From Adineta vaga (lineage: Eukaryota; Animalia; Rotifera), in assembly GCA_021613535.1 (NCBI GenBank), contig CP075494.1:2046001-2110000 (forward strand): DNA of 64,000 nucleotides. Direction: 5' to 3'. This document shows, piece by piece, positions 12,875-48,138 of this stretch. Position numbers and translations under genes: made by a program. The notes under the pieces were generated by a model. It did not search any database, was not told the origin of the DNA, and saw only the letters and a program-made list of their open reading frames with translations. Within the stretch, counting starts at the first letter, position 1; the number at the start of each line of letters is the position of its first letter.

Positions 12875-14201
12875 TTACAATAGTTCATATAATTCTGCAG
12901 TATTTTTGGCTCCACGATCATAACCACCAGCAACTAAAATTTTTCCGTTTGTCAATGTTGCTGCTATGTGATCAGTCCGAGTATGACTCATGTTTCCAGC
13001 AATTATCCAATTTCCTGTCAATGGATCATACAATTCAGTGGTAATCAGTTCATCAATAGCATATCCACCGGCAATCAATACTTGTCCATTTGTTAATACG
13101 GATGCTGTATGATCAAACCGAATATCCTTTAAACCATTGATAACCGTCCATGTTTCTGTAGTTGGATCATATAATTCAGCACGACTTGCAGGATCATGTG
13201 ATCCACCAATAACTAATACTTTTCCATTTGCTAATACAGTTGCTGTATGGCTTTGTCGTCCACTCGTCATATTGCCAGTATATGTCCATGTTTCTGTCAA
13301 AGGATCATACAGTTCAGCAGTGCGTTCATTAGGATGATCACTTCCACCAACGACTAGAACTCTTCCATCTTTTAACACGCATGCGGTATGATGTTCTCGT
13401 CCACTATTCATACTGGTAGTATTTGTCCATGTTTCGGTTGACATATCAAATAATTCAGCACTATCTAGATGAGTACCACCATTAAATCCACCAGTAATTA
13501 AAACTTTGCCATTCGGTAATATAGTTGCTGCATGTTCACTTCGTGCATCTTGCAGTGAACCTGTAAATGTCCAAATACCTGTTGATGGATCATACAATTC
13601 CGCGGTATCCTGATAACTATGAGAAGCTTCTCCACCCGCAACTAATACTTTTCCGTTTGTTAACATAGATGATGTGTGAAATTCTCTTTCAATATTCATG
13701 TCACCAGTAAGCGTCCAAGTGCCTGCCGATGGATCGTATAACTCAGCAGTTTTTAATTGATATACACTACCCATTCCACCGGTAATTAAAACTCTTCCAT
13801 CATTCAACACAGATGCTGCATGTCGATACCGTGCATTAACCAGGTCACCAGTGTTACGCCAAACTAAATGGAAAAACAATAGTTCCAAAGAAAGAATCTG
13901 ATAGCAACGGATCGAGAAAATCCCAATAATAAATTCATGACAACTCACCATACTCTTGATAGGACGTCGTAGTGGTTGTTGTAATTGTAGTTGATGTAGT
14001 TGTTGTTGTAGTTGATGTTGTGGTAGTAATTTCAGACTTCGTCGGTTTAAGAATAATAAACTTTAATATGAGCGAAAAAACAATTATACATAATACAAGA
14101 ATAATTAAACCTATACAAATAAATTTAGTTCGACGTTGCTGCCACCACTGAAAGCGCTTTATTTCTCTAACAGCAGTATCGCTGAATGGATTAGAATTCA
14201 T
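12875..14201 (-). CDS. Type II membrane Kelch / galactose-oxidase-like beta-propeller protein with Thr-rich stalk
   Basis: Exons 14201-13949 (TM helix, poly-Thr) and 13863-12875. Seven repeats of R..HTA..L.NGKVL..GG...AELYDP....W. Confidence 0.9.
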
Positions 14202-16673: not shown

Positions 16674-17981
16674 TCAAGATGACTATACCAATTTTTATTT
16701 CTCTTCATCAAGACTTTATGTTCATTTTGTTTCCTCAATTTGAATTTCAAATATCTCAATATTTCAGATTAAATGAAATGATCGATTTTTGTTCCATATT
16801 CACATGAGAAAATCAAGATGAATTTCTTCTTTATTGAAAAAATCGAAGAAAAATGTATGAGAAAAAAACAAAGAGAGAATAATAATATCAAATATCACTT
16901 TTTTTTTCTTTGTAGAAAAAATATATCAATTTGATTTTGTGAAAAGATTTTATTAAAAAATGTTGAACTTTCACATTTTCATCATTATTCTTCTTTTTAT
17001 TTTCCATAATGAAATAAAAGGTAAATCATTCGACTTTTCATTGATAAGATGAATAGCAAAGCATTGTAAATTAAAGAACCTTATTGAAAAATTTATTTAA
17101 ATATATATTCTTTTAGCTCTTTCATTTAATCAACCAAATTTATCTTCAGCAGCAACTTGGAATCGTAATGGAATTACTTTTGCGAATGAATCGATTGTTG
17201 GAGAATATCCTAGAAGCATTTTTATTAATACAAACAATACAATCTATATCATTAATCAAAATAGGAAGAGGATTGTAATATGGTTTAATAATAGTCTCAA
17301 ACCAACACATTTCTTTCCTGGCAACTTCTCAACTTCCTATTCTCTGTTTGTAACATCAAATGGTAATATTTATATTGATAATGGTTTTTTGCATAAAAAA
17401 GTCGAAAGATGGATATCAAAGAACATGACTTTTGATATTGTTATGAGTGTAAATTCATCTTGTTATGATCTCTTTGTCGATATTAATGATAATTTGTATT
17501 GTTCAATGCAGCGACAGAATAAAGTAGTAAAACGAGACTTGAAAAGTTCTTCATTGACACCAGTTATTATTGCTGGAACAGGTAATCTGGGATTTGCTTC
17601 TAATGAACTTAATAGTCCTCATGGAATTTTTGTTGATATTAATTTGGATTTATATGTGGCAGATTGTGGGAATAATCGAATTCAGTTGTTTCAATCAGGA
17701 GAAATAAATGCTATTACAGTTGTAGGTACGGAATCACTGAAGGCAACTATTTCACTTAAATCTCCTAGTGTAATTGTATTGGATGCTAAGCAATACTTAT
17801 TTATTGTGGATTCTTGGGGTAATCGTATTGTTGGAGAAGGACCTTATGGTTTTCGATGTTTAATTGGATGTTATGGAGCAGGTTCTCGATCTAATCAATT
17901 AAACAAACCAATTACTATGAGTTTCGACAGTTTTGGTAATATATTTGTTGTTGACAATGAGAATCATCGCATTCAAAAATT
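16674..17981 (+). repeat. Recent 1.3 kb segmental duplication of 25027-26334
   Basis: Colinear at a constant offset of 8353 bp; roughly 17 substitutions seen by eye. Covers the upstream region, exon 1, intron 1 and most of exon 2 of the NHL-GPCR. Confidence 0.95.
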
Positions 17982-17991
17982 CTTCATTTAA
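16960..17991 (+). CDS. Truncated duplicate encoding signal peptide + one NHL beta-propeller (secreted?)
   Basis: Exons 16960-17020 and 17117-17991. NHL motifs LNSPHGIFVD..LYVADCGNNRIQ. Stops 3 codons past the duplication breakpoint (RIQKFFI*). Confidence 0.75.
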
Positions 17992-20216: not shown

Positions 20217-23200
20217 ATGAAATCAAAAGTGAATGACGAGAAAACTGATGAGTATCAACCATTGTTAAATTCAAAGAACAATTCGCCTGAGCAGAGTGTA
20301 CCTCGTCAACGTCAACCATCGCGTCTTGAATGGGCTGAATCATCTTGGATACGATTATGGTATATTATCAGTTGGCAATGGATCAATCCTTTACTTTCAT
20401 TAGGTTATAAAACTACTTTGTCAGAAGAAGATTTGGATGACTTACCTAATCAAGAAAAATGTTCTGTTTTGTATGATATGATAAAAAACTCCCAAACAGA
20501 ACACGAGAAAACATTCATCATATTTCGACGAGTGTTTTGGAAACGTTATTTATTAGTTACGTCTCTCCGATTGCCCATAATGATCTTTGTCATTGCTCAA
20601 CCATTGTTTTTATACAAACTAGTTCTATATATTACAGATCATCAACATAATCAATTGTCTCCATCGGCGCCAGTTTATAGTGGTTACTTATATGCAGCCG
20701 GCTTGTTTAGTTGTGCGCTTTTTCAAGCACTTTTTTATCATCAATATTATTTCTACTCAGCTCGTCTTGATCTAATGATTCGAAACTCCCTTCTATCAAC
20801 TATTTTTGCACATTTGTTGTCAATCAATACGACGACATTACGACAAGTAGGAACTAACTATGTCACGAGTATTGTTACTAATGATGTAACAAAGTTCGAA
20901 GAATTTTCTAAACATACTGCCTACATAATCGAAGCACCATTCATTTCTGCCGTTATTTTTGGTTTACTCTATTGGATTAATGGATTTTGGTCAACAGTAT
21001 CTGGTTATCTTATATTCATCCTATTGATTCCATTGCAAGTGACTTTAGGTCAAAAATTTAATCAACACCGTAAGAACGTTGTCGTCCATACTGACCGACG
21101 TATCCATGCGTGTGAAGAACTTATTCGAGGAATTCATGTTATTAAGATGTACAATTGGGAAGAATATATGAAAAAACGAGTTTGTGAAACGCGTGAGCCT
21201 GAAATAAATAGTATTCGACATGCATTTGTTTTACGTGCAATAAATATGGGCTTGTTCTTGGCATCGATACCTCTTACTGGATTTGCTACATATTTTGGTG
21301 CTTGGCTTAGTGGACGTCATTTAACAACAATTCAACTTTTTATTACTCTCGCATTCTTTTCGCAAATGCGTTTTCCAGTGATGTACTCATTACCGGTTGC
21401 CATTGAAAAATTAGTAGTAATTCGTCAATCATGGAAGAGAATTATTAAATTTCTTCAATTAACTTCCGAACACGAACAAAAACTACTAGACCCAAAAGAT
21501 TCTCAGCAAAAAGGAACAATTACGATGCACGATGCTTCATTTTCATGGGATGAACGTAATTGTTGTCTTTCATTACTTAATATTCGTATTGAACCAGGAA
21601 CATTCGTAGGTATTGTTGGACCGGTTGGATCTGGTAAATCCTCATTATTTTCAGCTATTCTTGGGGAAATGATTCTAGTAGATGGTCAAATCAATGTTAA
21701 TAATAGTTCTTTTTCTTATGCCGCACAATCTCCATGGATATTTGCGGATACATTACGCGCAAACATTATCTTCGGAAAATCCTTCGATGAACAACGTTAT
21801 AGAAGTGTTTTACATGCTTGTTGTCTCGATATTGATTTGACTATTCTTGGATCTAATGCAGATTTGACAATGATTGGTGAAAATGGGGTGAATTTAAGCG
21901 GAGGTCAAAAGGCACGCGTATGTTTAGCACGTGCTTTGTATGCAGATTCGGATATTTATCTTCTTGATGATCCATTAGCTGCAGTTGATCGAGTTGTAGC
22001 AAAACGAATCTATGACAAATGCATTGGCCCAAAAGGATTATTGAAAAATAAAACTCGTCTATTAATCACACATCAAACACAGTATTTAACTAAATGTCAA
22101 CAAATAATCGTGTGCGATCAAGGCAAAATGCAAATAAAAACTCCAAATTACAATCTCAATCAACAGGATAATGAAGATGAAGAAGAAAAACAAATATCAG
22201 CAGCTATGCTCGATATCGGACAATTATCTGCGTCTCATCAATCAATTATTGTGAAAGAAACATCGAAAACCCTACATATTCGTAGTTCTTTGTGGTATTC
22301 TCTTTTTACTGCACCACCATTAAAGGCTTTAGGTTTATGTCTCACGCTTATTCTTCTTTTATGTGGTCAAATACTTCATGATGGTACTAATCTATGGCTT
22401 GCTTTTACCTCGCGACAATTGAAATACGCAAAGTCTACTAATTCTATTCCTCTGTCAACTTACTTTATTTTAACTATTGCAACATTATTTGTAGCAATCG
22501 TACGCAGTAATTTTTTCTTTTATCAAATTTTGAATGGTTCAAATTATCTTCATAATAAAATGCTTTCTGGATTGTTACATGCATCGATGCGTTTCTTCGA
22601 AAGTAATCCAAGTGGACGAATTCTGAATCGAATGAGTAAAGATCAACAAATTGTTGACGAAACATTACCTGAAATCTTATTCGATGCCATACAATCCTTG
22701 TTATTACCAATTGGATTTATTTGTATCATTCTCATTATCAATCTATGGATGATACCTATAACTATTTTCGTAGTAATTATATTTTGGTTCTATTTTCGAT
22801 ATTACATTCGATCAAGTCAACAACTTAAACGAATGGAAAGTATGACGCGCAGTCCGATTTATGGATTATTTGCATCATCACTGAAGGGTTTAACTACTAT
22901 TCGTGCATTTAAAGTTGAAAATGATCTTATAAATGCAATTGAAACTTTTATTGATGACAATACACGTCTACACCTTCATCTGTCAGGCACAACGCGTTGG
23001 TTCACATGTCGAATGGATCTTCTAGCAACTTTATTTGTATTTTTTCCTGCTTTTGCTGCTGTTATCGCGCCCACTAGAGTAGATGCAATATTTTTAACAC
23101 TCACTTTGTTTTATAGTATTAATATAACTGCACGATTACAGCATGCTATTCGACAATCAGCAGACGCATACAATCACATGACTAGTGCAGAACGTATCGA

Positions 23201-24033
23201 TGAATATGGCGATTTGCCACCAGAAGAAGATAATGGTGGATCGAAAAGATTAATTAAAACATCAGCTGATTGGCCAAGTCAGGGAGAAATTCGATTCCAC
23301 AATTATTCCTTACGCTATCAATCGAATCAAGAAGCAACATTGAAAAATCTAAATTTGGTCATTAATTCTGCTGAAAAAGTTGGAATTATAGGTCGCACGG
23401 GTAAGAATGATTTAATTATTGTTGCTCAACGAAACTGTTTCCTTTGATATTTTAATAGGTGCAGGTAAATCATCTGTATTTCAAGGTCTTTTACGTTTAG
23501 TTGATCGATCGTGTATTGATGGTGAAATTCTTATTGATGATATTGATATTAGTCGTATTACTTTGAATCATCTTCGTTCACAGATCAGTGTTATTCCGCA
23601 AAATCCGATACTTTTCTCTGGAACTCTTCGATTTAATCTTGATCCATTGAACTTTTATAGTGACGAACAATGTTGGAAAGTTTTGGAAATTGTTCAATTG
23701 AAAGAAATGGTTTTCAATCATCCCCAAGGTCTTCATATGTCAATAGCTGAATCAGGTCATAATTTAAGTATTGGTCAATGTCAATTAATTTGTGTTTCTC
23801 GAGCTCTTCTTCGAGAAAGTCGAATATTATTAATTGATGAAGCCACTGCTAATGTGGATCATGAAACTGATCAATTACTACAATCATTAATAGTTGATGT
23901 AGTTAAAGATCGAACTGTATTAACCATTGCTCATCGATTGAATACAGTGACAAACAATGATCGACTTCTTTTGTTGGACGGTGGGAAAATCGTCGATTTC
24001 GATGTACCTGAAACAGTTTTAAATCATGTTTAA
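20217..24033 (+). CDS. ABCC (MRP4-like) full ABC transporter, about 1252 aa
   Basis: Exons 20217-23400 and 23459-24033. NBD1 GPVGSGKSS / LSGGQ / YLLDD; NBD2 GRTGAGKSS / LSIGQ / LIDEATA. TMD motifs IKMYNWE, FFESNPSGRILNR, TIRAF. No TMD0. Confidence 0.95.
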
Positions 24034-24311
24034 TAATCATTTGAGATTAATCAAAAAGAGATTAAGAACTATTTTCATATTTCACTTCAACTAATGAATG
24101 AAATAGAAATAATAAACTTCTATTTCACATGTTTTTTTTTTCGACACTTCTCCTCACGCTCTCACTAGGCACACAAGTCGATTATTAATTTTTACAAATG
24201 TTCACAAAGAAAACAGATAACCCACTGGATACATCATTCGTAACAAGTAAACTTAATTTTCTACTTTGGGTGTGGATGTGGATTCTATACTCTAATATAC
24301 ACCCACCCTCA

Positions 24312-24697
24312 ATGACCTGCTACTACGGAGCGTGGATATTCACCAACACCATAATTCATAAGAGTGAAGAAATCTCTATTACTTCTACCCAATCGTATAC
24401 TAACAGTATTATAACCATAATTCGCAACTGCCAAATCCAAAACTTGATCCTTGTTGAAATTAGCGACATTTATAGACCATGGAACATGATCAACAGTATA
24501 TTGATTAGGATAGTGAGAGAATGCGCCATTTAGAAAACCAAATAGTATCATAGTATAACTCCCATCGTCATGACCCACTAAAGAATCTCAATAACCATCA
24601 TCATACAAATCAGTTGATATAACCGATATTAGAATGAGACCAACATAATGTTCGAACAAATAGTTAAAACTTCCTTGCTCATCCCCGAATAGAACAA
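24312..24697 (-). pseudogene. FG-GAP/VCBS repeat gene fragment
   Basis: ANFNKDQVLDLAVANYGYNTVSIRLG, YGVGEYPRSVVAG. In-frame stop at 24588-24590, no start or terminus, hairpin elements on both sides. Confidence 0.75.
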
Positions 24698-25312: not shown

Positions 25313-28300
25313 ATGTTGAACTTTCACATTTTCATCATTTTTCTTCTTTTTATTTTCAATAATGAAATAAAAGGTAAATCATTCGACTTTTCATTGATAA
25401 GATGAATAGCAAAGCTTTGTAAATCAAAGAAACTTATTGAAAAATTTATTTAAATATATATTCCTTTAGCTCTTTCATTTAATCAACCAAATTTATCTTC
25501 AGCAGCAACTTGGAATCGTAATGGAATTACTTTTGCGAATGAATCGATTGTTGGAGAATCTCCTAGAAGCATTTTTATTAATACAAACAATACAATCTAT
25601 ATCATTAATCAAAATAGGAAGAGGATTGTAATATGGTTTAATAATAGTCTCAAACCAACACATTTCTTTCCTGGCAACTTCTCAACTTCCTATTCTCTGT
25701 TTGTAACATCAGATGGTAATATTTATATTGATAATGGTTTTTTGCATAAAAAAGTCGAAAGATGGATATCAAAGAACATGACTTTTGATATTGTTATGAG
25801 TGTAAATTCATCTTGTTATGATCTCTTTGTCGATATTAATGATAATTTGTATTGTTCAATGCAGCGACAGAATAAAGTAGTAAGACGAGACTTGAAAAGT
25901 TCTTCACTGACACCAGTTATTATTGCTGGAACAGGTAATGTGGGATTTGCTTCCAATGAACTTGATAGTCCTCATGGAATTTTTGTTGATATTAATTTGG
26001 ATTTATATGTGGCAGATTGTGGGAATAATCGAATTCAGTTGTTTCAATCAGGAGAAATAAATGCTATTACAGTTGTAGGTACGGAATCACTGAAGGCAAC
26101 TATTTCACTTAAATCTCCTAGTGTAATTGTATTGGATGCTAAGCAATACTTATTTATTGTGGATTCTTGGGGTAATCGTATTGTTGGAGAAGGACCTTAT
26201 GGTTTTCGATGTTTAATTGGATGTTATGGAGCAGGTTCTCGATCTAATCAATTAAACAAACCAATTACTATGAGTTTCGATAGTTTTGGTAATATATTTG
26301 TTGTTGACAGTGAGAATCATCGCATTCAAAAATTTGAACTAATAAAAATCTCTCCTGGTGAGTAGGAAATCAATGTAGGATGTTTTTCTCTTACCCATAT
26401 ACACATTCTCAATTTTATTAAAAATATTTGTTTTTCATTAAATACTTTAGCTCTTTCGTTTAATCAAAAGCAATTTTGTCAAAGACCAATTTGGAATCCT
26501 AACGGAATAACTTTTGCTAATGAATCCATTGTTGGACCATATCCTGCCAGCATTTTTATCAACACTAATAATACTATCTATGCTGTTAATTTAGGAGAAC
26601 AGAATATTTTAGTATGGAATGCTAGTAGTCACGAACTAATAAACATTATTCCAGGAAATTTTTGGAATGTCATCTCTTCGTTTGTAACATTGAATGGTGA
26701 TATTTATATTTCTAGTGGTAATAGGAATAAAAAGGTGGAGAGATGGATATCAAAGAAAATGTTTTTTGAAACTGTTATGAATATAAATTCAACTTGTAAT
26801 GGTCTTTTTGTGGATATTATTGATAATTTATACTGTTCAATGGAGCGTCATCATCAAGTGATAAGAAAGGACTTAAAATACTCTTCATTGACACCAGCAG
26901 TCATTGTTGCTGGAACCGATACTAGTGGAAGTTTTTCCAAACAATTACACAACCCTCATGGAATTTTTGTTGATATTAATTTGGATTTATATGTGGCAGA
27001 TTGCGGAAATGATCGAATTCAGTTGTTTCAATCAGGAGAAAAAGAAGGAGTGACAGTTGCAGGTTCAGAATCACAAAAGGAAACTATTTCATTAAAATGT
27101 CCTACTGGAATTGTATTGGATACTCTAAAATATTTATTTATTGTCGATCAAAAGAACAGTCGTATTATTGGAGAAGGGCCTGATGGTTTTCGATGTTTAA
27201 TTGGATGTTATGGAGAAGGTTTTCAATCTAATCAATTGTATTGGCCAGTTATTATGAGTTTCGATAGTTTTGGAAATATGTTCGTCACTGATTATAAAAA
27301 TCATCGTATTCAAAAATTTCAATTCTTAGAAAATTCTTGTGGTGAGTTAATGAAAGATTTCGTTTCATTGAAAAGTACATGTAAAAATGAAATAAGATGC
27401 GTAGAAAAACTATAAGTTAAATAAAGAACGTTTTACAAAAAACTTAATGATATAATCTTTAGATTCTCCATTGAATCAACCAAAATTTTGTTTGAAACCA
27501 GTTTGGAATCGAAATGGTCTAACTTTTGCTAATCAACACATTCTTGGTTCTAATCCATCTACCATTTTTATCAATAGAAATAATTTCATTTATACAATTA
27601 ATCGAGAGAAAAAACAAATTTTAGTTTGGAATGAAAGTGACATAAATCCATCGTTGATCATTTCCACTGAGTTTTCTAATTCATCTTCTCTTTTCATTAT
27701 GTCAAATGGTGATATTTATATTGATAATGGAGTAGAAAGTCAAGTGAAAAAATGGATTATGAATACAAATATATTTGTTGATGCAATGAATGTCTTTTCA
27801 TCTTGTATCAGTTTATTTATCGATACAAACGATTATTTATATTGTTCAATGCTCAAACATCATCGAATTATAAAAGGAAATCTTCATGAGACTATCATGA
27901 TATGGACTACCGTGGCTGGAAACGGTATCAAAGGATCAGCAGCTAATCAATTTGATCATCCTCATGGGATTTTTGTTAATATAAAGTTCGTTACATATGT
28001 AGCAGATTGTGGAAATAATCGAATTCAACGATTTCCATCAGAAAAAATAGATGGTATTACAGAAGTTGGAAGTACAACATCGGCGCAACAAACATATTCA
28101 CTTTCATGTCCTACAGGAATTACATTAGATACTCAAGGGTTTTTATTTATTGTTGATTCAAATAATCATCGTATTATTCGATCAGGATCAAATGCTATTC
28201 ATTGTATCATAGGATGTGATGGAATCAATATCAAATCTAATCAATTATTATTTCCATCTAATCTTGCTTTTGATAGTTTTGGAAATATGTTTATTATGGA

Positions 28301-30476
28301 TTCAGGAAATAATCGAGTACAAAAATTTGAATATTCAAAAAATTCTTGTGGTAAGTTTTCATGAAAGTAAATAAATATTTTAAGTGATTAAGAAGAAAAA
28401 GTAATTTGATTCAAAGAAAGAGAAATCATGAGAAAACTTATTTAGATATTGAACAAGAATAGTAGAATTAAGATAGAAATTTCAGTTTGGTTCACATTAT
28501 ATCTGTATAGATATGTCATCAGTTATTCAATTGACAAATTCAATAGTATTGACTAGAACTAGTCAGATATATTGTCGAGAATGTATTCAATCTAGTCATT
28601 ATTATGAAACATTTCAAATAAAAGTATCTGAAAATCGTTTTTATAAAATATGGAGTAATGCCAAAATTGATACATATGGTTATATCTATGAAAATACTTT
28701 TGATTCACTTAATCCAAATGAAAATCTTCTTATCAAAAATGATGATGGAGAATCAAATAAACAATTTAAATTTGAACTTCCTCTTTATGATGATGTTATA
28801 TACGTATTAGTTGTTACAACATTTAATCCAATGGATATTGATAATATCACAATTTATATGTCAGGTTTAAACAATGTTATTTTTAACCGTTCGAGTAAGT
28901 AAAGATATTTTCATATTTTTAATAATTAAATGTTGTTGTTATTCTTATTATTAAATAGGTACTCCAATAAATATTCTTTTTAATTATTCATCTGAATTAA
29001 CAGCAAATAGTCCAATGTATTATCGAGATTGTCAAAGACCAAAATGTTATTATGAAATATTTGAAATCAATGTCAATACAAATGCATCATATATTATATG
29101 GAGTGAGAGTACAATTCATACATATGGTTATATCTATAAAGATAATTTTGATCCATTGAAACCATCAGATAATCAATTATTTGAACATAATGGAACGTGT
29201 AATCAACAACAATTGAAATTTATTATTAATCTACAAATGAACATTCGTTATATATTAGTTGTAACAACATTTGAATCTTATACAATTGGAAAATTTTCTC
29301 TTTTTATATCTGGATTAAATCATACAAATGTCACTATTAAACATTCCAGTGAGTAACTTTTTCGTCTTACTTTTTATCATTACAAACGTTGATTCTATTT
29401 TAGATTCAAATAGTAAATATTGTGTTATTGGTGATCAATGTAATCTTCATTATAAAAGTATTGGTTTAACATTAGATGATATTTTATATGAAGAACTTAA
29501 GAAGAATTCAACATTAAATCAACAAATTTTCTCGGTAAAATTCAGTGCTGGTTTAACAATTCTTATGTTTATTGGAGGATTAATAAATAGTTTTCTTTCT
29601 TTTATTACATTTCAAAATAAAGAAACACAACAAGTTGGATGTGGATTATATCTTCTTGCATCATCGATAACTTCTTTTCTAACAATTAGTATGTTTCTTA
29701 TTAAATTTTGGTTTGTTATATTGACTCAAATCAATGATTTTACAAATCTTTCTATTCATCAAAATGGTTGTAAATCAATTGAACCTATTTTGAAAATATT
29801 TCTTTATTTCGATGGTTGGTTAAATAGTTGTGTTGCTATTGAACGAGCATTTCATGTTTTCAAAGGAGTGAATTTTAATAAACAAAAAAGTAAAATTGTT
29901 GCAAAATGGATAATTCTAATTTTACCAATATGTATTATGTTGACTCTTATTCATGAAGTTATCTATCGAAATGTATTCTCATATCAAATTTCAAGAAATG
30001 AAACATTTACAAATGAAACTGAAATAATTAATACAAGACGATATGTATGGTGTGTAACTGGTTATTCTTTTACTATTCAAAACTATAATACAACTATTCT
30101 GTTTTTTCATCTTATTGGTCCATTTATTGCGAATCTTTTTTCCGCTTTATTTATTATTTTTGGAGTAGCTCGAAAACGATCTAAAGCACAAAAGAATCAA
30201 AGTTTAAAATTATATATTCGTGAACAATTCAATGAACATAAACAATTGATAATTAGTCCAATAGTTTTACTTGCATTATCAATACCACGTTTGATTATTT
30301 CATTACTTCCTGGTTGTGTAAATGCATCAGAAAATTTATGGTTATATCTTAGTGCTTATTTTATATCATTTATGCCATCAATACTTATCTTTATCATCTT
30401 TGTCGTTCCTTCGAATCTTTATATGAAAACATTTAAAGAATCGTTTAAGAAATGGCAACGTCGAACACATCAATAA
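25313..30476 (+). CDS. Giant receptor: signal peptide + 3 NHL propellers + 2 PPC-like beta-sandwich domains + class A-like 7TM, 1524 aa
   Basis: Exons 25313-25373, 25470-26357, 26451-27341, 27463-28350, 28511-28894, 28959-29348, 29404-30476 total 4575 nt in one frame, all introns phase 1. The 7TM has CVAIERA. Confidence 0.85.
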
Positions 30477-31117: not shown

Positions 31118-34100
31118 ATGCAACTATTTTATCGATATTTTCTTATGATTTTCATAATTTGGTTAAATTTTTTCTATTTAAATGGAAAATATTATTATTT
31201 ATATGATAATGATTGTTTGGATTATAATGCAACAGATTACGAACTAGAGCCCGAACTAGTTACAAATGAACATCAAATAATATCATTTTGTCGAGTTGAT
31301 AATTTTGAATATGAGCAATATAATGAAATTGATAAAGATATTTCACAACTAACATTCTATGAACTATATATACAAAACATAACTAGTTTACAATTATACC
31401 AATGGTCAGTACATCTTGATTTAGTCGAAGAATATCAAGCTTTTCTTGAGAATAGACTTGATATTAATATTCTTACAGCAAATTTAACAATATATAATTG
31501 TTGGATTAAACAAAAATTTGGTCGATATTGTCAATATTCATTTGATTCTCAGGTAAGTTTAATTTTAGATTCTGATCGGAATAGATGAAGTCTCGCTTTT
31601 TCCATCTTGTTAAAACTATAATTTTTTATCGATTTTATAGAAACCATTTGCTACTATAGTAGATAACGCTCTCGAAAGAAGTGTTTCACTATCATTCAAT
31701 GGTACATGTTATATGCATTTGAATTGTAAACGTAACAATGTCACATGGTGCCTCGATTGGCGTGATGTATGTGATGGAAAAGTTGATTGTTGGCCTAATC
31801 ATGTCGATGAACAATTTTGTGAAAGTCTTGAACAAAATCAATGTGATTTAAATGAGTATCGATGTATGGATGGTCAGTGTATTCCTGACATTTTTTACTT
31901 AGATGGAAGTTTTGTTCCAGACTGTTTGGATGGATCCGATGAAGATATACGTGAAAAATATAAATATGCCTGTAGGAAAGGTGATAACCCGTCTTTTAAA
32001 TGTCATGATGTTAAATGTCGACATTGGATTCAATCCATGAGTTCCACAAGTTGTAGACCACTTGCTGAAATTGAAAGAAATTCTATTATCACGCGACAAA
32101 TGGATGAAGATCTGTTATTACCAGATGTCAATACTCATATAAATAAAGGATGTTGGACAACGATGATATGTCTTGTCCATGCACAAAAATCTTTTCTAGT
32201 AAGTAAGAATAAGATTCAATGACGAAATCAAGAAGAAAAGAATTTATTACGTATATTTCGCTTGACAATTCTGCAACAAGTGTTCAAGAGATATGATGAG
32301 AGTAATATACAAATATATTTCATTCTATATTTAGAATAATCCAACCTATGCACATTTATTCAATGGAAGTTGTAGAAATATTTGCTTTGAACCAGATATA
32401 CCTTGTACTAAAAGATTGATGGAATATTGTCCATCATTATTTGAATTTCCAGCATTATCAGTTGGTTGGAGTGATCTACACTTTATTTATGGATGGAATC
32501 GAACAAATACATCCTTAGGTTACCCAAATTATGTCTGTTATAATGAACGACGTTGTTCTATTTCTCAATTAAATATTTATTTCAAGAAAAAAAGTGAATC
32601 GTCGACAATTCTTTCTTGTGAATTTTTACATCTCGACTATATTAACATTGAATGGATAACAAAACTTCAATTCTATAGAAAACACATGCATCAACAATGT
32701 TCTTTAGCAACAGATATAAATGAAAACTATTGCTCTGAGCATACTCAATTTCGTTGTGCTAAGAAATGCATTTCAAAACATCGCATAGGAGATTTTTTTC
32801 AAGATTGTATTAATTTTATGGATGAAAACTTGTACAATGATACTTGTAGTTTAAATTTAAAACATCGTTTAGCATGTACATTTGATATTGCTGAAAATAA
32901 ACAAGTAAAATGTCTACGCATCATAAACGTACTTCCACAATCAAGAATGATTTGCACAGATGATTTAGAAATACCTCATTTTCCTACTTTATGCAATGGA
33001 TTAACTGAATTTGAAGAAAATATTGAAACAAATTGTGAAATGTGGCAATGTGATAATCAATATACAAGATGTGATGGTATTTGGAATTGTCCAAATGGTG
33101 AAGATGAAAACAATTGTTTTCATGAAATATGTAATGGATCAATAGGACAACCATGTTTATTATTATATACAGCTAAATATATATGTTTACCTATAGCTAA
33201 TATAAGTGATGGCATAGTAGATTGTATAGGAGCAACTGATGAACAGCAAGCATGTCGAAATATTGAGGAAAGAGTAGGCAAATATCGTTGTTTGACAAAT
33301 CGTACTGATAATAAACAATTTGCGAATGAGTAAGTCTTTTACGTATAATGTCTTTTTTTAACCTACCATTATCGAATTTGTTTATACTTTCAATAATTAT
33401 TATTATAGGACTCAACAATGTATCCATGTCGATGATACCTGTGTTGAAAAATCTATGTGTATCGTACCCGAATTGAAATGGTCTCCATTGTGTAAAGATG
33501 AAGACTTTTTTGTTACTTTATGTATTAGATTTTGGACTATGGATCGACGAATAACAGAACACAATATAATGTGTAGTTTAGATGAAAACTTATTTTTTCA
33601 TACTTATTGGAAATCTAAACGACCACAATTTTCAGTAAATAATTATAATATTATTTCCGCAGTTGGTAAATCACTCGTTGATAATTCAAAAGCATCGATT
33701 GTAACTAACAGGAAGAAATCTACTCCATTGATTCATTTCACTAAACAAGGTATAGTTTTAAACAATTTTCAATGTCATGGTGGTATACCAATTTATTCGG
33801 GAAAACATATTACATGTTTATGTCCATCTTTTCTCTATGGTTTACAATGTCAATATCAAAATCAACGTATTAGTATGACATTAGAAATTGGTGCACCTGA
33901 ATGGCGAATTCCATTTGTATTTGTTATTTATTTAATTGATGAAACATTGGAAATCGTTAATTCATATTATCAAATAAGATATTTATCAATTCGCGATTGT
34001 AATAGAAAATTTCATTTTCATTTACTTTATTCAACTAAACCAAAATATTTCGATCATAAATATTCAATTCGAATTGATGTTTTTGAAATGAATACACTTG

Positions 34101-36172
34101 TATATCGAGCAAGTTGGTTATATCCAATTTTATTTCCAATCTTACCTGTTTATCGTTTATCACTTCATCTGACTGTACCATTCGTAAGTTTGTCGTCATG
34201 TACACTTAAATGTCCAGTTGATCGAAGTCAATGTAGTTTATATAGAAATATTAATCAATTTGTCTGTCGATGTAAATCTGGTTGGACTGGTTCAATGTGT
34301 ACAATACCTTATAAATGTAATTGTTCTCCAGATTCTATTTGTGTTGGTACATGGATGAATAAATCTATTTGTGTATGTCCAACATATAAATTCGGTCGTC
34401 GTTGTTATCTGAAAAATAATCTATGTGAACGATCAAATGCAAGAAAATGTCGAAATCATGGACAATGTATTCCAGGTATTGTACAATTTCCTCGAAGTTT
34501 TCCAACAATTTGTTCATGTTTATATGGTTTTCATGGTGAATTATGTGAATTTAGAGATTCACAAATCGATATATCACTTCATATGTCAAATATACCAGAT
34601 TCATTATTAATACATTTTATAACAGTTAATTCTCATATGAATTCTTTACCATATGAACCTATACTTAAATATGGTCCACATGAACGTGCAACAACATTTA
34701 AAAGAATTACATTTGATAAAAATTCTGTTCGTATTTATTGGCAAAATCCATTTCATTTCATTTTTGTTCAATATAATTCACAAATCTTTTGGATTTTCAG
34801 TCAATTAAAATACAATCGATCATTACATTTAAAATTAACCCTTCAATCTTATTTTCGTTGTCCATCAATACAAGAAAATTTATTAAATCAAACAATTCTT
34901 AATTATCCTCGAAATCAACGAGTCAAATATTATCATATTCCTTGTCAAACTAATTTCAATTTAACTTGTTTTCATGATCAAGATCAATATATATGTTTAT
35001 GTACATTTGATCATCGAGCAAATTGTTTTACATTTGATCATCAAATCAAATATTCATGTCAACAATTATCTTATTGTGAAAATGGTGGTCAATGTTTTCA
35101 AAATAATCTCAAATGTCCATCATCCGCTGTATGTTCTTGTCCAAAATGTTATTTAGGTACACGTTGTCAATTATCAACTCGAGGTTTTAACCTTCCACTT
35201 GATGTTATTCTTGGTTATAGAATTCGATCAGGTCAATCATTTTCTCAACAACCAATATCTGTACAATTTAGTGGAATTATTACAATGTTTATGTTTTTAT
35301 TTGGTATTATTAATGGAATTCTTTCAATTCTAACATTTCAAGTAAAAGAACTTCAAAAAATTGGTTCAGTTATTTATTTATTTATTGCATCAATTATTTC
35401 AATTATTATTATTATTATTTTTACATTAAAATATTTATTATTTGTTTTAACACAAATATTAATGATATCAAATCGACAATTTTTATTTAGTCAATGTATA
35501 ACAATAGATTTACTTTTAAAAATTACCGTACAAATTGGTGATTGGTTATATGCATGTGTTGCAATTGAACGTCTTATAACAGTTATCAAAGAGATTAATT
35601 TTAATAAAAAATTTAGTAAAATTATAGCAAAATGGATTATTTTATTTGTTTGTTTAACTGTTATTATAAGTTCAATTCATGAATCATTCTATCGACGATT
35701 AATTGATGATGAAGATCAAGAACGAATATGGTGTATTTTAGACCAATCAAATGCTTTAAATTTATTTACATCAATTACAACTGTTTTTCATATTATTTGT
35801 CCATTTATAATTAATATTATTTCAGCATTAGGAATTGTTCTTATGAGAATAAAATCACGTTTAAATTTACGAAAAGATCAAAATATTTATGAACATATTC
35901 AAAATGAATTTCATAAAAATAAATATTTAATAATAAGTCCAATTGGATTAATTATATTAGTTTTACCTCGTATTATTCTTGCTTTTCAATTAGAATGTAT
36001 GAAACCAGCACGTGAATCAGTTACATTTTATTTAATTGGATATTTTATTTCATTTTTACCATCTTTATCTCTTTTTATTATTTTTATTCTACCTTCAAGA
36101 AAATATCGACAAGTATTCAAAAAATCTATTCAAAGTCGATGGAAGAAATTTTCTCAATGGATTCATTGTTAA
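31118..36172 (+). CDS. LDLa- and EGF-repeat 7TM receptor, about 1583 aa
   Basis: Exons 31118-31552, 31641-32198, 32335-33329, 33409-36172 (4752 nt). LDLa motifs (CDGKVDC...DE, DCLDGSDE, CDGIWNCPNGEDE), EGF motifs (CENGGQC...CSCPKCYLGTRC), 7TM with CVAIER. Confidence 0.9.
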
Positions 36173-40747: not shown

Positions 40748-43700
40748 TCAAACATTTTGTTTATTATTTGATTCATTTTGCATATCAAGACGAGTCTCTG
40801 ATACGACTGGTGTTTTCGGTTTACTGGGTGATTGATTATCTTCTGTATTATTTGTTGGTTGTTGTTCTTCTTGATTCGTTACAAATGTTTCTATAACTAT
40901 ATTAATTATAAATAATTTCTTCTTTTACTGGAAAAAATATTACCTGATTTCTTTTGTTTACTATATGGAGGATCTTCTCTGGACATTTTAACACGTGCCA
41001 TTGCAGTCATAATCCAATCCATTGAATCAATCAACTAAATATACAAATATAATTCTTCATATTAAAATATATTTATCAATACTTTATCAAGACGAGCATC
41101 TATATTATCAACTCGATCAGATATATTCGAATGCATAGATAATAATTTCTCATTAGTTTCCATATGTATACGTGTAAGAGCGACATTCAATTGATTTGTA
41201 TCAAACTTTTGTTGATTTGATTCATTAGTATTCTTCGACATAGCTTCGAATCTGTAAATATGAATAAATCAAAACATATTTTGATCTTTAATTGCAATAC
41301 TTACGAAACATCTGTTGTTATTATATTCGAAGCCGCAGCTATTTGTGCATCGAATAAATGTCGAACATAATCATTTGTTGAATATCGTTCAAATTCTGAC
41401 CAAGCTTTGTCAACACTATCATTAGCTGGAATCATTTCTAAACGAATATAGTTAAGATTAAACATCATATATGCAAAGAATTCATATTCTACTTACTAAA
41501 ATATCGTTTTTCTTTATTTATTATAGAACATTTACTTAAACACCATTTACCAAAATCAACTAACGAAATAAGAAATGTCAATGGAGGAAATAATGCTGGT
41601 CGACCGTAATAATCACGAACTAAACCACAACGATCATAAGCCCAAATATATCGTGCTTGTTCTTGAATATTGGTTATTGTAAAACTAAAATATTCCGTAT
41701 TTTCTTTGTCATCATATTATTATTCAATTTGCTAATTTACTTAAATAAAGCAATAAGTAAATTGACCAAGAGAATATTAACAAATAACATATGAAAAGCA
41801 AATAGAACTTGTGTAGCTATAGTTGTACTAGCATTTGGTGTTTCTAGAAAAAAGAAATTTAATTGAAATAAAGATTAATTGTTCGATTCATTTTACCGTT
41901 TAGAGTGGAAAGTTCATCACCAATATTACCAAGAATAAAATAATAAACTGGATAAACAATTTTTGCAAAGAATTCTCGACCATCAAAAGGAAAAGTATTG
42001 TACGCTATCATTGCTCTTGATCTTATTCCATAACCAAGAATAAAAACCACAATAATAAAGGAAAAAAATAACATATCATTTGCCTATATTAATAATTCTA
42101 ATTATATACACTAACATTAAATTTCTAAAGACATACCATTTTTCGTATCATAACCAATTTTGGACCTAGAAGACGAAAAATACCAATAAATAGAATCGAA
42201 CGAATAAACCATAATTCTAGATCGTATGCCAATACAATTCTATGAAAAATAATTCATTTTAGTATAATTCTAATGTAATGATAATACTTATACCTTGCAG
42301 CTCCGAATGTTTCTGTATCTTTAAGAATAAAACGTAATATAAGTCCAACATAGAAGAGTAAATATGCTGGAATAACAAGAAAAAGATTTGATGATCGATT
42401 CATCACATCAAAATGGCTCAAAAATTTCCTTTTCCATGATAAACCATCTTGGAAATAGAACTATAATTTATAAATAATAAAACGAAAAAGATTAGATGAA
42501 TTAGAATTTATAAACCTGTCGAATATCTTCTATGAGCATTGTAGATACGAATATGATAGTTAAAATTTCAGTCCAATGAATATCGGGAGTACTGTCTGAA
42601 GATGGATTAAATGCATAGAGCATATAATAACTGAAGAACATCAGGAAAAGAATATAACCAAACTAAATAAAAAAACTCAACTAGAAAGACTTTTCTATGA
42701 ATGAAAATATAAAAATCTTACACAAGTATAACAATATTTAACAAATGGACGGTTATGAAAATGTTTAAAATTTTTAAATGTTGATTCATCTATGTGATAA
42801 TCATCTCCATAATTAATACCATTTTTAGCCAATGGTCGTTCATTTATTGATTGTTTAGTGGTCTGTAAAGCTATGAATAATCATATATCATCATGAATAT
42901 ATCAACTTACATTCGTTTGCACAGTTTTTTTCCGAGAATATATTATTTTGTCATAAAATGAAAACAAAGATTGTGCAACACCTAATGTTAACAAACCCAT
43001 GATAAGGCTAGTACGTTCTCGTGTAGAATCAATTTTATCAAACCATATCTTCGTTAATAAAGCATCACATGCATCTTCATTTAAAAATTTCTTATTTTCA
43101 GCAGCAATAGCCACTTGTAAACAAGTTACTTTTCCGTAGAGATCTACTTGTCGTATAATCAATTCACATACTTGTTCACGATCATAAAGATACGAACAAC
43201 GAATACATTCAATTGCATACATTTCAAAATCATCTGCTTCATCATTTAATTTATCTTTTGAATGTTGATCAGGTGCATAGCTTATTAATGATTTAAGAAT
43301 TTTTGAAGCAATCAATGCTGAACAAATACGAATTTTTAATTGACTAAGAAAAAATTTTGCCATATCAAGTCGATGAGTAAGTATACACCATAGAAAAAGA
43401 TCACGATAAATATATTCACTATCAGTTTGACTATTTGAGATTTCTGGTATTACTTTCTGTTGATTTGATGATATTTTATGATGATATAATGGTTCCATAA
43501 AATCTCCAACTAAAATTTTAAGTATTTGACCTAAATATATTCCTTTTTCAGAAATAAGCTTTTCATCGATTCTTTCGAGTAGATACAATGAATCAGTCTA
43601 AAGAAGAGAGGAGAGAGAAAAAAACAAAGCACTTATTGTTCTAAAAATTTTCTAAATCATTCATCAATACATTTTTGCGCATTGTACTTGTATATAATTC

Positions 43701-45875
43701 TTTCAGATAAGTATTCCATGATGTATCTGTATTATTTTGTTTTGAATCAGCAGTAGAAACAAATAAACTAGCTAAATCAATACCAAGTTTAGAGAAATTA
43801 CTGACAAATACTACTAGATTTTTGCTAAGAGCATCAAGAATTAATCTCCGATTATCTTTCATCTATACAATAAACAACATTATAAAAATATCAAATAAAG
43901 ATCATAGCATACTTTTTTTGGATCTTTCCAATTAATTGTATTGATTAATAAATGATTTTCAGTAACATTAGCAACATTCCAACGAAGTGCAAGACGTATT
44001 TGTTCATCAACTGCATTAGCATGGTTTGTAGTATTTTGTGAATGAGATTCTCGTGCTAAGAAAAATAGAAAATTTGATATTGATTAAGAAAAGAATTCAT
44101 CTAACCTTGAACCATTGCATCGTAAATCTTATTTTCTAAACGATCTGATAAATTCATATCAAAAACATGCATTCGATTACGAAAAGGTAATTTTAAACAA
44201 ATTGCAAACCAATATAAATATTGTGCAAATTTATCTTCTTCATGCAAATCTAGTAATTCACTTGTAGATATTTTTGTGCCAATAAGTAAATATTCTTTCT
44301 GTCTGATACTTTCATAGAGTTTCCTTACATCTTTTAAAATATCTGAACGTATTTCGCCGAATACGTTCAAAATTTCTTCTAAACTGAAAATTAAATTATT
44401 TTACATTATTCAAAACTATTATTATAGTTATACATACATCTTTCCTCTAGGCATTTGTTTAAATGAATATTTATCCATTTTATCATGTTCAATGGATTCA
44501 GCAAGATCTAAAATAAAGTTATTATTCATTGAATATTGAAAAAAATGTTGATAATACTTTTAGTTAACTTCAAATATTTACACAATAATGTAGCTAATGG
44601 ACCACTTTGCTGTATGAGATAAAATCAATTATGATAAAAGCAAAATAAGAATAACTTACATCAATAATAACAACTGGAATGTTGTTATACACATAATTGA
44701 ATATGGATTTGAGAGCATGAAGATCAGCTCCTGCAAGAATTGCCAATAATGGTACTAGAATAAGATGAAAAAAATAGATTTTTTAAATAGAATTTCAAAA
44801 AGAATAACTAACTTTTTCGTCGTGTTCCATTTGATATATGTATCGCAAGTTTTGAAGCAAAATCACCAGTATCCATCGAACCATGTGTACCATCATCGAA
44901 AAAAATATATTGTGTAAGATTAGGTTCTAACGTATATCGAGCAAGTGTTGTATGGTATTTTGTATTTTCATCAATATTCTCGATGTTGTGCATAGGCGAA
45001 AATTTAAGCAAATGATCAGTTATATTATACTTGGATTCTATTATTGATGGATCAGGTATATTACCCCATTTACCAATCCCGACTGCTCGAAAATTAATCT
45101 GAGGATTTTTCACACGACTTTTATAAACAACTTCACCGATAAGTTGTGAAATGGTATCTTCTTTGTAAGTATTTGTGATAATACATGCATCTAAAATTGA
45201 ATAGAATATTTTATTGATATATATGCGAATAATTGTAGAAGTCCTACTAGATGCTGTAGCTGCATCAGCAATGCCTTTCAAAACTGCTTTCTCTAATTTC
45301 ACATTCAGTAGAGAACTTGTATCACTTATTATACGTATAATCAAACCAGGTAAATGCATATCCCATATACTCAATAAAACTAAACAGAGCTGATCAAGAT
45401 CTGTCTTAATACTACAACGTAAATACTATAGAATAAATAAGAATAATCAATATTATTTTGCTGTTAAAAGATATTAATACATACAGGACTCTTCGATTGA
45501 GGTAAACAACCATAGACAATCGTCGGTTCTTCCTTGGTATGCCTTTTCCAAGACCATACTTCATTACGATGATCACTTTTGATAGTACTATCCTCATGAA
45601 CTGATTTATGTTGATTACAAACACAAAAATCATTATCAACTCTAATAGATACAACGATTAAATGAGTTTATATTTCAGATGAACTGTGAATGCATACTCT
45701 CGTGGAATGAAGGTAACACATGTTCGTTGTTGAAACTGTAATCGATTTATAGCAGCCTTCCAAGCTGGTAGTTTATCCTATAGTTCAATTTGAAATAAGA
45801 ATCAAACAAAAGAAACAGAACTTGTTTTATACATACATCTATAACTGTTGAGCTTTTTGGAAGCGATGAAAGCAT
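40748..45875 (-). CDS. TRPM-family cation channel (N-terminal SLOG/MHR, 6TM, TRP box), without C-terminal NUDT9-H or kinase
   Basis: More than 20 exons. LEPNLTQYIFFDDG, YRDLFLWCIL, ALIASKIL, TCLQVA, GPKLVMIRKM, NILLVNLLIALF, WAYDR.GLVRDYYGRPALFPP. Stop TGA at 40748-40750. Confidence 0.9.
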
Positions 45876-46154
45876 CTTTTCGAACTGAGTAGTAATTTAT
45901 TTTGTTAACAATAGAAGATTATATAGCTCTTTTTATTTCTGTTTACTATTGATGGAAAAAACCCCTGTAAAGTTTATTTTAAAAGAATTGAGGAATGAAG
46001 TGTAGACTCTTGTACATAATAAAATAATGAGAAAAAACCCTGATTTTTAATTCTTTTCCTTTCCCTAAGAGGAGAAAAAAAATGATTTTCACCCCAATTG
46101 TGAATTGGTTTCGTATAAATATATTCTTTTTTTTTAATTCAGTAAGCAAAAGAG

Positions 46155-47819: not shown

Positions 47820-48138
47820 ATCAATAGAACACTTAGCATCATATATTACATAGAATTTTTCACTTGTGAATTCATATAATATGTTAAAGAATAACTATAC
47901 TACTATATCTGGATGATATGTAAGTGCTTGTCCTTGATATCTTCGTTATCCCCTTTCAATCTCATTCTAAGTCAAGCTAGAAAGAGAGAGTTTCAAATCC
48001 TGCATTTTTTTGGCACCTGCTATAGTTGATTATTGTAATGACTGACTATGTCTTTATTTTCCTTTGTAGATATAAATCTTCTTTGAACGTATTTATAATT
48101 CATATAAATATATTTTTTATTTAATATAATAACAATAG

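Follow-up and report, generated by a model that had tools for sequence, protein, structure and literature searches.

Class A GPCRs with large ectodomains carry mainly LRR or LDLa repeats. In the LGR/RXFP receptors, the snail receptor GRL101, and the Ciona LDLRR-GPCRs (PMC2396169), a rhodopsin-type 7TM lies behind a long repeat ectodomain, as it does in the gene described here. For the bdelloid rotifer Adineta vaga, the passages found in PMC3846280 place 7-transmembrane receptors and NHL-repeat proteins among the expanded gene families and suggest defense, chemosensation, and signaling for these; they handle the two expansions as separate families and mention neither a fusion nor an exon-per-domain design. 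We analyzed a 64,000-nucleotide stretch of the A. vaga genome (the window), in which positions 25313 to 30476 read as an intact gene for a predicted rhodopsin-type surface receptor with an ectodomain assembled domain by exon. Pfam detected no LRR or LDLa repeats in any exon, and literature searches for an NHL or propeller ectodomain on a GPCR, including in bdelloids, returned no paper describing this architecture. Database proteins with NHL plus 7tm_1 already exist; their names ignore the architecture, and the beta-sandwich module is left unannotated.

Gene model, paralogs, and exon phase

Splicing was deduced from the DNA, and the exons were joined by script for a check of the reading frame. 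The features are as follows.

25313..25373, + strand (61 nt): exon 1, ATG and predicted signal peptide (20 aa) with a phase-1 donor; similar hydrophobic first exons lie upstream of paralogs and at the start of ACD54717.1
25470..26357, + strand (888 nt): exon 2, outer NHL propeller 1 (Pfam NHL above cut-off, E 2e-15), variable predicted face, without the terminal Cys pair
26451..27341, + strand (891 nt): exon 3, NHL propeller 2 (Pfam NHL above cut-off, E 3e-12), variable predicted face
27463..28350, + strand (888 nt): exon 4, membrane-proximal NHL propeller 3 (Pfam NHL above cut-off, E 2e-16), predicted face conserved
28511..28894, + strand (384 nt): exon 5, beta-sandwich (jelly-roll) module 1, PPC/calpain-III-like fold with bacterial surface-repeat kin
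28959..29348, + strand (390 nt): exon 6, beta-sandwich module 2
29404..30476, + strand (1073 nt): exon 7, hinge, rhodopsin-like 7TM, and stop codon
29421..29486, + strand, in exon 7: two-cysteine EGF stump and conserved LDDIL hinge ahead of TM1, aligned to the final pair of EGF cysteines in the neighboring LDLa/EGF receptor (31118-36172)
16674..17991, + strand: recent partial duplicate of the upstream region, signal exon, intron 1, and propeller 1 (98.5% over 1308 nt), reading as a secreted single propeller of 311 aa

The seven joined exons (signal, three NHL, two sandwich, and 7TM) form a stop-free frame of 4575 nt, i.e., 1524 aa plus the stop, and each large exon contains 6 to 37 stops in its two alternative frames. 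All six introns are bounded by GT and AG, lie in phase 1, and span 55 to 160 nt. These results confirm the initial annotation, which had proposed that six ORFs splice into one protein, and its claim of one domain per symmetric phase-1 exon was borne out in both the window gene and paralog loci.

About 20 genes, the window gene included, are of the propeller-sandwich-7TM type. At 19 of the 20 paralog loci fetched, the domain order was NHL(1-3)-sandwich(1-4)-7TM with phase-1 borders. Moreover, an automatic picker applied to homologous borders at 21 loci returned phase 1 at 90/90 donors and 108/114 acceptors, an exon and phase pattern that is therefore not due to chance. The family was found in A. 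vaga, A. ricciae, and A. steineri, in the latter two as both proteins and DNA; thus, the window gene is a family member rather than a one-off mosaic. GenBank entry ACD54717.1 shares the order of three NHL propellers, two sandwiches, and a 7TM, and differs from the window gene in its location, being a paralog on a different chromosome, and in its 7TM, which is broken. The same modules are reused with astacin, PLAT, or TIR domains or occur alone, and such phase-1-bounded domains in different architectures are those of class 1-1 exon shuffling, so that the earlier suggestion of shuffling stands, together with duplication. Exon 3 is a tandem duplicate of exon 2 (63% amino acid identity), and propellers 1 and 2 group as sisters within locus L022, within L027, and within L023/L024; we infer that tandem exon duplication supplied the extra propellers on several independent occasions. 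The variation observed lies between paralogs, in the number of domains that the genome encodes; many paralogs carry a single propeller. Exon skipping, which the initial annotation had also raised, may occur, being feasible by frame, but the four putative RNA runs searched gave no sign of it.

The 7TM exon and the LDLa/EGF receptors

Exon 7 has the hydrophobic segments of a seven-helix receptor, its structural model (pLDDT, 80.5) shows the corresponding fold, and the top 50 Foldseek matches were all class A (best E, 1.5e-7). Among 17 7TM exons in the alignment, 16 from the family and one from the LDLa/EGF neighbor, Pfam 7tm_1 matched 13 (best E, 7.9e-10), with no match in the window exon 7, and in the database family members tested, 7tm_1 fell below the gathering cut-off. 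Invariant in the alignment are C122 and C216 (TM3/ECL2), E146-R147 (ER at the DRY position), W168 (TM4), P239 (TM5), and P294 (TM6); we take the relevant alignment positions to be W4.50, P5.50, P6.50, and D2.50. In the window 7TM, D2.50 is replaced by Ser and NPxxY by a hydrophobic stretch, absences that are common in divergent invertebrate receptors. The class A assignment of the initial annotation is thus strengthened by the fold, the TM3/ECL2 cysteines, ER, and the W and P residues. A PDB profile search gave melatonin MT1 and CCR6 as best matches and no LGR/RXFP structure, so no kinship with the LGR branch was shown; nor did it support a likeness between this hinge and the one that acts as internal agonist in glycoprotein-hormone receptors.

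Bdelloid LDLa/EGF-7TM receptors, of which the genome holds hundreds of candidates, have a homologous 7TM; 7TM candidates number roughly 450 in all. The window 7TM is 37% identical to that of the neighbor at 31118-36172, and other long-frame copies, compared by their 7TM alone, reach up to 55%. Both types have a hinge with the last two EGF cysteines; however, in the neighbor, 7TM and EGF repeats are continuous in one long exon, whereas the window 7TM is a separate phase-1 exon behind an ectodomain of unrelated type. Its acceptor lies 68 nt ahead of the LDD motif at 19 of 21 loci, behind an intron of 46 to 890 nt. The 7TM tree included two LDLa/EGF-type sequences, so nesting within that family was not demonstrated by the tree. 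Judged from sequence and model, the 7TM is predicted to be rhodopsin-like and held in common with the LDLa/EGF receptor family.

Kinship of the sandwich and propeller modules

The sandwich had been likened to bacterial PPC domains, a likeness that holds for its PPC-type jelly-roll fold and bacterial kin but not for Pfam membership. None of 46 sandwich copies matched Pfam PPC (PF04151) at E 0.1, a weak first-look test of the genome yielded no PPC candidate, and calpain domain III (PF01067) matched one of the 46 copies (E 0.013), with short sub-threshold matches in repeat proteins. The module is an unnamed jelly-roll whose best folds are calpain III (Z, 12.1 to 12.8, the latter for calpain-7 domain III) and PPC-type domains (Z, 9.9 to 10.9: Tk-SP C-domain, 10.9; ColG CBD, 10.0; B. 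anthracis collagenase PPC, 9.9), so that calpain III scores equal or higher. Language-model features leaned to PPC clusters (0.90-0.91), and PDB sequence searches with the sandwich, single and profile, gave nothing meaningful. Its sequence kin belong to an unnamed family in bacterial PEP-CTERM, dockerin, and cadherin-like surface proteins; among the best 150 of 2594 matches, the kin outside bdelloids were bacterial or belonged to a marine microbial eukaryote. Rotifer copies formed one group (SH-aLRT, 92) in a tree that was unrooted and pointed to no donor. One Atlas cluster matching the sandwich was labeled mostly viral, likely because of mislabeled rotifer contigs; a single scan of viral contigs, bearing on a viral route, found no relative. 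The module also occurs in Rotaria behind an astacin protease, whose PDB matches are animal astacins; a bacterial origin of this protease is therefore unsupported.

For the propellers, PDB matches were six-bladed NHL domains, the best natural ones being animal TRIM-NHL proteins, which leaves a foreign origin of the NHL part unsupported. Of the foreign binding modules envisaged earlier, the sandwich, with its bacterial kin, is a candidate. Terminal cysteine pairs co-vary within propeller exons (Fisher p 0.008).

Apparent face diversification and competing readings

The propellers are under purifying selection (dN/dS about 0.4-0.75). Six blade motifs per propeller were placed by hand, and 24 predicted top-face sites were assigned by motif analogy rather than from a propeller 3D model. 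At these sites, pN/pS was 1.88 (bootstrap, 1.39-2.46) in outer propellers versus 0.28 (bootstrap, 0.11-0.49) in proximal ones, a contrast that rests on four and two pairs and on a partly circular test, since the sites were picked after the entropy track had been viewed. Between propeller 3 of the window and its closest paralog, differences fall at 0/24 face sites and 55/253 other sites. Apparently, then, the outer propellers diversify on their predicted face and the membrane-proximal propeller is conserved.

We favor, with somewhat better than even confidence, the reading that the locus encodes an intact member of a bdelloid (Adineta) rhodopsin-type receptor family with a modular ectodomain. 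Its last exon would derive from the LDLa/EGF-7TM receptors, a far larger family in this genome; a phase-1 acceptor within the final EGF repeat would have detached the 7TM from its old ectodomain. The 7TM exon could then have become a docking exon for symmetric phase-1 modules, which are present in the genome by the hundreds. Sandwich exons probably joined it before the propellers did, because Rotaria has a gene with four sandwiches and a 7TM; the order rests on this one gene. The protein would be secreted to the surface, where the outer propellers may bind an external macromolecule through their fast-diversifying top face, with the proximal propeller and sandwiches as conserved platform and stalk. 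The disulfide-stump/LDDIL hinge would relay binding to the 7TM, and the 7TM would in turn signal to a G protein. Most likely, the receptors would serve as a germline-encoded set recognizing microbes or other environmental macromolecules. A bolder version, which we hold only tentatively and consider doubtful, is a bdelloid germline repertoire of recognition receptors in which a GPCR was fitted with NHL propellers that vary and with a bacterial surface module gained by horizontal transfer. Its multi-propeller members would show an outer variable/proximal constant split, and further forms would come from exon skipping and from duplicates that encode a secreted single propeller, 16674-17991 being one such duplicate.

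The ectodomain of a real receptor might, however, be an adhesive or structural tether under relaxed constraint, with mechanical or constitutive signaling or with the 7TM as an anchor only. In bacteria, the kin of the sandwich occur as repeats of surface proteins, the 7TM is without NPxxY and D2.50, and the dN/dS of sandwich 1 (0.7-0.9) fits relaxation. Yet relaxation alone is insufficient, because pN exceeds pS on the outer-propeller face while these sites stay fixed in the proximal ones, and the 7TM is the most constrained part of the protein (dN/dS, 0.28-0.35); we regard a tether as unlikely. Conservation of the proximal face, which extends across paralogs at 58-65% identity and to A. ricciae, would also suit a chemosensory or endogenous-ligand receptor, in which a signal made by the rotifer itself would bind to the proximal propeller or in the 7TM pocket, with the outer propellers in an accessory role; the clusters that its 7TM resembles most are peptide-receptor-like and Srw-type. 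The many single-propeller members, which are variable too (pooled pN/pS, 1.79), argue against such a receptor and make it quite improbable in our judgment.

It is also conceivable, though very improbable, that the region comprises two or more genes (an NHL-sandwich protein that is secreted, and a 7TM of its own from ATG 29328) or is silent. Four putative RNA runs, chosen by guess, gave no contig of a window gene transcript and only 18- to 48-nt matches from paralogs, the listed "joints" being paralog artifacts; the window DNA is present in public runs from 2013, possibly of the source strain, and none of the runs containing it is on record as RNA. NHL-sandwich proteins without a 7TM exist in databases, some paralogs are broken, and the 7TM frame runs open through intron 6, which contains an ATG. 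However, the introns, at their sizes, leave no room for a terminator and promoter, exon 6 ends without a stop, and all exons are intact and under purifying selection. Furthermore, a start at ATG 29328 is not conserved, an in-frame Met occurring upstream of the hinge at 8 of 21 loci, in contrast to the acceptor fixed in 19.

If the variable face is real, the preferred reading of a modular recognition receptor would offer direct candidates for microbe recognition in bdelloids, in which fungal infection elicits little upregulation of classical invertebrate immune genes (preprint 10.1101/2021.09.04.458992), and the variable versus constant propellers indicate the domain of choice for ligand-binding tests. 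The sandwich, for its part, shows how a module that has kin in bacteria became an exon subject to shuffling. With the LGR/RXFP receptors, GRL101, and the Ciona LDLRR-GPCRs (PMC2396169), the family shares lineage-specific expansion, varying repeat number, and a proposed sensing of large extracellular complexes. LGR/RXFP and GRL101, however, use LRR/LDLa ectodomains, whereas the window gene has NHL propellers and jelly-rolls. The propeller-sandwich-7TM family would thus represent another ectodomain solution, in one animal lineage, with a seam that still shows in the EGF stump where the fixed phase-1 acceptor lies.

Structure of the receptor gene and its sandwich module

The gene under study has seven exons and six GT..AG introns and encodes 1524 aa with one terminal stop, exactly as the initial annotation had modeled it.

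Exons of the gene and its partial duplicate (window coordinates)
25313-25373, +, exon 1, from frame and splice sites
25470-26357, +, exon 2 (propeller 1), Pfam NHL match
26451-27341, +, exon 3 (propeller 2), Pfam NHL match
27463-28350, +, exon 4 (propeller 3), Pfam NHL match
28511-28894, +, exon 5, sandwich 1, no Pfam match alone
28959-29348, +, exon 6, sandwich 2, no Pfam match alone
29404-30476, +, exon 7, 7TM, no Pfam match alone
16674-17991, +, partial duplicate of the gene, a 98.5% copy over 1308 nt

All six introns (55 to 160 nt) are in phase 1, and the length of each of the five internal exons is divisible by three. The gene was searched against databases exon by exon, the exons being joined only to check the frame. 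In these searches the three large exons all passed the proposed per-domain HMM check for Pfam NHL, and exons 5, 6, and 7 each gave no Pfam match.

The initial annotation had likened the sandwich to bacterial PPC domains. Its predicted structure is all-beta (pLDDT 89.6), a jelly-roll nearest in fold to calpain domain III (Z 12.8 and 12.1), followed by PPC-type and collagen-binding domains (Z 9.7 to 10.9); among Atlas models from outside the rotifers, a bacterial PEP-CTERM protein comes closest (TM 0.88). A profile built from 46 sandwich copies matched 2594 proteins, and the kin among the matches listed include repeat proteins that also have dockerin or cadherin-like domains (20 to 48 bits per repeat) and are encoded on contigs that are clearly bacterial. 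A transcript from a marine microbial eukaryote (up to 58 bits) also matched the profile, as did open frames of ~200 aa in Acidobacteria genomes (E 2.5e-14); two related loci that were inspected encode secreted PEP-CTERM-type proteins. In the alignment, six residues are invariant and a Y..F.P..P..N motif is shared. Thus, the proposed bacterial kinship holds at the sequence level, while 0 of the 46 copies match Pfam PPC and the family is unnamed. In an unrooted tree the rotifer copies stay together and no donor is indicated; we judge a horizontal origin of the sandwich to be plausible and somewhat favored.

Bdelloid sandwiches also occur after astacin proteases and with PLAT or TIR domains. The former arrangement, seen in database proteins P0132, P0170, P0190, P0191, and P0251 (Rotaria where a species is named), recalls bacterial peptidase-PPC proteins; in the A. 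steineri models P0312, P0341, and P0360, a PLAT or TIR domain is joined to an NHL-sandwich block.

Propeller duplication and face variation

Propeller 1 shares 63% identity with propeller 2, and propeller 3, the membrane-proximal one, is 47 to 49% identical to either and clusters with the proximal propellers of two close paralogs. In several paralogs the extra propellers cluster within their own gene; multi-propeller forms thus have more than one origin, each by duplication of exons in tandem. Most propeller exons have cysteines at both ends; these two residues co-vary (P = 0.008, duplicates removed), which fits each exon being a closed folding unit.

We scored 24 face sites, located on either side of the blade proline and after the blade aspartate; in NHL propellers we take these positions to line the top face. 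Mean entropy was 2.8 bits at these sites versus 1.47 elsewhere in the propellers. As the test used few pairs and sites set by motif without a three-dimensional model, after the entropy track had been viewed, its ratios are to be read with that bias in mind: in outer propellers (four sister pairs), pN/pS was 1.88 at face sites (bootstrap, 1.39 to 2.46) versus 0.66 at the remaining sites, and in proximal propellers (two pairs) face-site pN/pS was 0.28 (0.11 to 0.49). The bias from selection of sites weighs less on the conserved proximal face than on the variable outer face. The differences between propeller 3 and its closest paralog number 0 of 24 at face sites and 55 of 253 elsewhere; for propeller 1 they number 16 of 24 and 85 of 253, respectively. 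A. ricciae keeps the pattern of the proximal face at 58% identity.

The partial duplicate, 8353 nt upstream, takes in almost the whole of propeller 1 together with intron 1, the signal exon, and upstream sequence. Terminated by a stop, it reads as a 311-aa predicted secreted single propeller and may be either a decoy or a dead-end duplicate; two of its amino acid changes are at predicted face sites. Between it and the receptor gene, ORF translation gives an ABCC-type transporter gene (20217-24033, +). An isolated frame with FG-GAP-like repeats lies just upstream of the receptor on the opposite strand (24309-24578, −); bounded by stops, it resembles a remnant or a lone exon. The window also holds a Kelch-repeat ORF (12875-13951, −) and minus-strand TRPM-like exons facing a TIR-containing ORF (42902-50304).

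The 7TM exon and the bdelloid family

The 7TM exon is predicted to fold as a seven-helix bundle (pLDDT 80.5), and class A receptors fill the top 50 Foldseek matches to this model (best E, 1.5e-7). Among 17 aligned 7TM exons (16 family members and an LDLa/EGF neighbor), 13 match 7tm_1; the TM3 and ECL2 cysteines, ER at the end of TM3, and marker residues in TM4, TM5, and TM6 are invariant, and neither the TM2 aspartate nor NPxxY is present. The neighbor, a multi-exon LDLa/EGF-7TM receptor adjoining the gene (31118-36172, +), has a homologous 7TM (37% identical) and an unrelated ectodomain; the alignment starts at the last two cysteines of its final EGF repeat. The distance from the 7TM acceptor to the conserved LDD hinge that precedes TM1 is 68 nt in 19 of 21 loci, while the intron preceding the acceptor ranges from 46 to 890 nt and contains an in-frame Met in only 8 of 21. 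These data speak against a stand-alone 7TM gene and favor a single old event in which the receptor end became a phase-1 docking exon. The LDLa/EGF form is probably the ancestor of the family 7TM, to judge from the EGF stump and family size.

The gene is one member of a family. The genome, that of the bdelloid rotifer Adineta vaga (six contigs, 100.8 Mb), contains at least 150 sandwich-exon matches and 950 propeller and 447 7TM candidates; the best 7TM matches (50 to 87% identity) lie nearly all in short frames adjoining sandwich matches. The order NHL(1-3)-sandwich(1-4)-7TM was found in 19 of 20 loci examined (short-frame 7TM beside a sandwich), and internal stops are absent from 17 of these 19; the exceptions are L033, whose 7TM contains a stop, and L035, whose propeller is split and which also has a stop. 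The locus without this order, L036, has seven sandwich exons, one with a stop inside, and a candidate signal exon, without a propeller. Homologous borders in 21 loci (automatic picker) were in phase 1 at 90/90 donors and 108/114 acceptors. A. vaga I4U23 database proteins align with the examined loci at 96 to 100%.

The A. vaga paralog ACD54717.1 (UniProt B3G4G9) has NHL x3, sandwich x2, and a partial 7TM; its locus (G000:C1:17072472-17077129, partly L004/L017) has the same architecture with a broken 7TM exon. Loci L023 (G000:C5:495600-505599) and L024 (G000:C5:540600-550599), three-propeller receptor genes ~45 kb apart, are near-identical outside the outermost propeller, which has 8 replacement and 6 silent changes. 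Family loci on contigs C1, C2, C3, and C5 lie within ~5 Mb of chromosome ends, and at L032 translation gives mariner-like transposase fragments (oriented 3121-4058) ~1 kb upstream of the family member.

A. ricciae and A. steineri database proteins have the same architecture, and the A. steineri gene matches in its phase-1 exons too. In one Rotaria gene, a 7TM of the same clade follows four sandwich exons; no propeller was found in the 6.8 kb upstream. All named matches with the NHL-sandwich-7TM architecture, among the matches listed, are bdelloid, and it is likely absent from non-bdelloid animals.

Proposed role and precedents

This is a real gene. Against the closest paralogs, dN/dS is 0.28 to 0.35 for the 7TM, 0.38 to 0.47 for sandwich 2, 0.38 to 0.66 for the propellers, and 0.78 to 0.94 for sandwich 1, which points to a working gene whose outer part evolves faster. 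The locus is in no run recorded as RNA, and four putative RNA runs gave short paralog matches only; expression, and the exon skipping suggested by the initial annotation, may still occur. That the locus comprises separate genes or is silent seems improbable; the fixed acceptor spacing and rarity of an in-frame Met speak against separate genes.

The mechanism we propose builds on the observed gene structure, family, fold classes, and selection pattern. We lean slightly toward a recognition receptor: the protein would be secreted to the surface, the outer propellers would bind ligand, the proximal propeller and sandwiches may form a constant platform and stalk, and coupling to a G protein could run through the disulfide stump and hinge. 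An adhesive tether is a less probable role, at perhaps one chance in several, and a receptor for an endogenous ligand or chemosensory cue is less probable again.

The NHL-sandwich-7TM fusion exists in databases as automatic annotation; a search of the literature available brought up no paper that describes it. In A. vaga, both NHL proteins and 7TM receptors are already known to be expanded, and the expansions have been tied speculatively to defense and sensing (PMC3846280). Class A receptors with lineage-specific repeat ectodomains have been described in Ciona and snails (PMC2396169).
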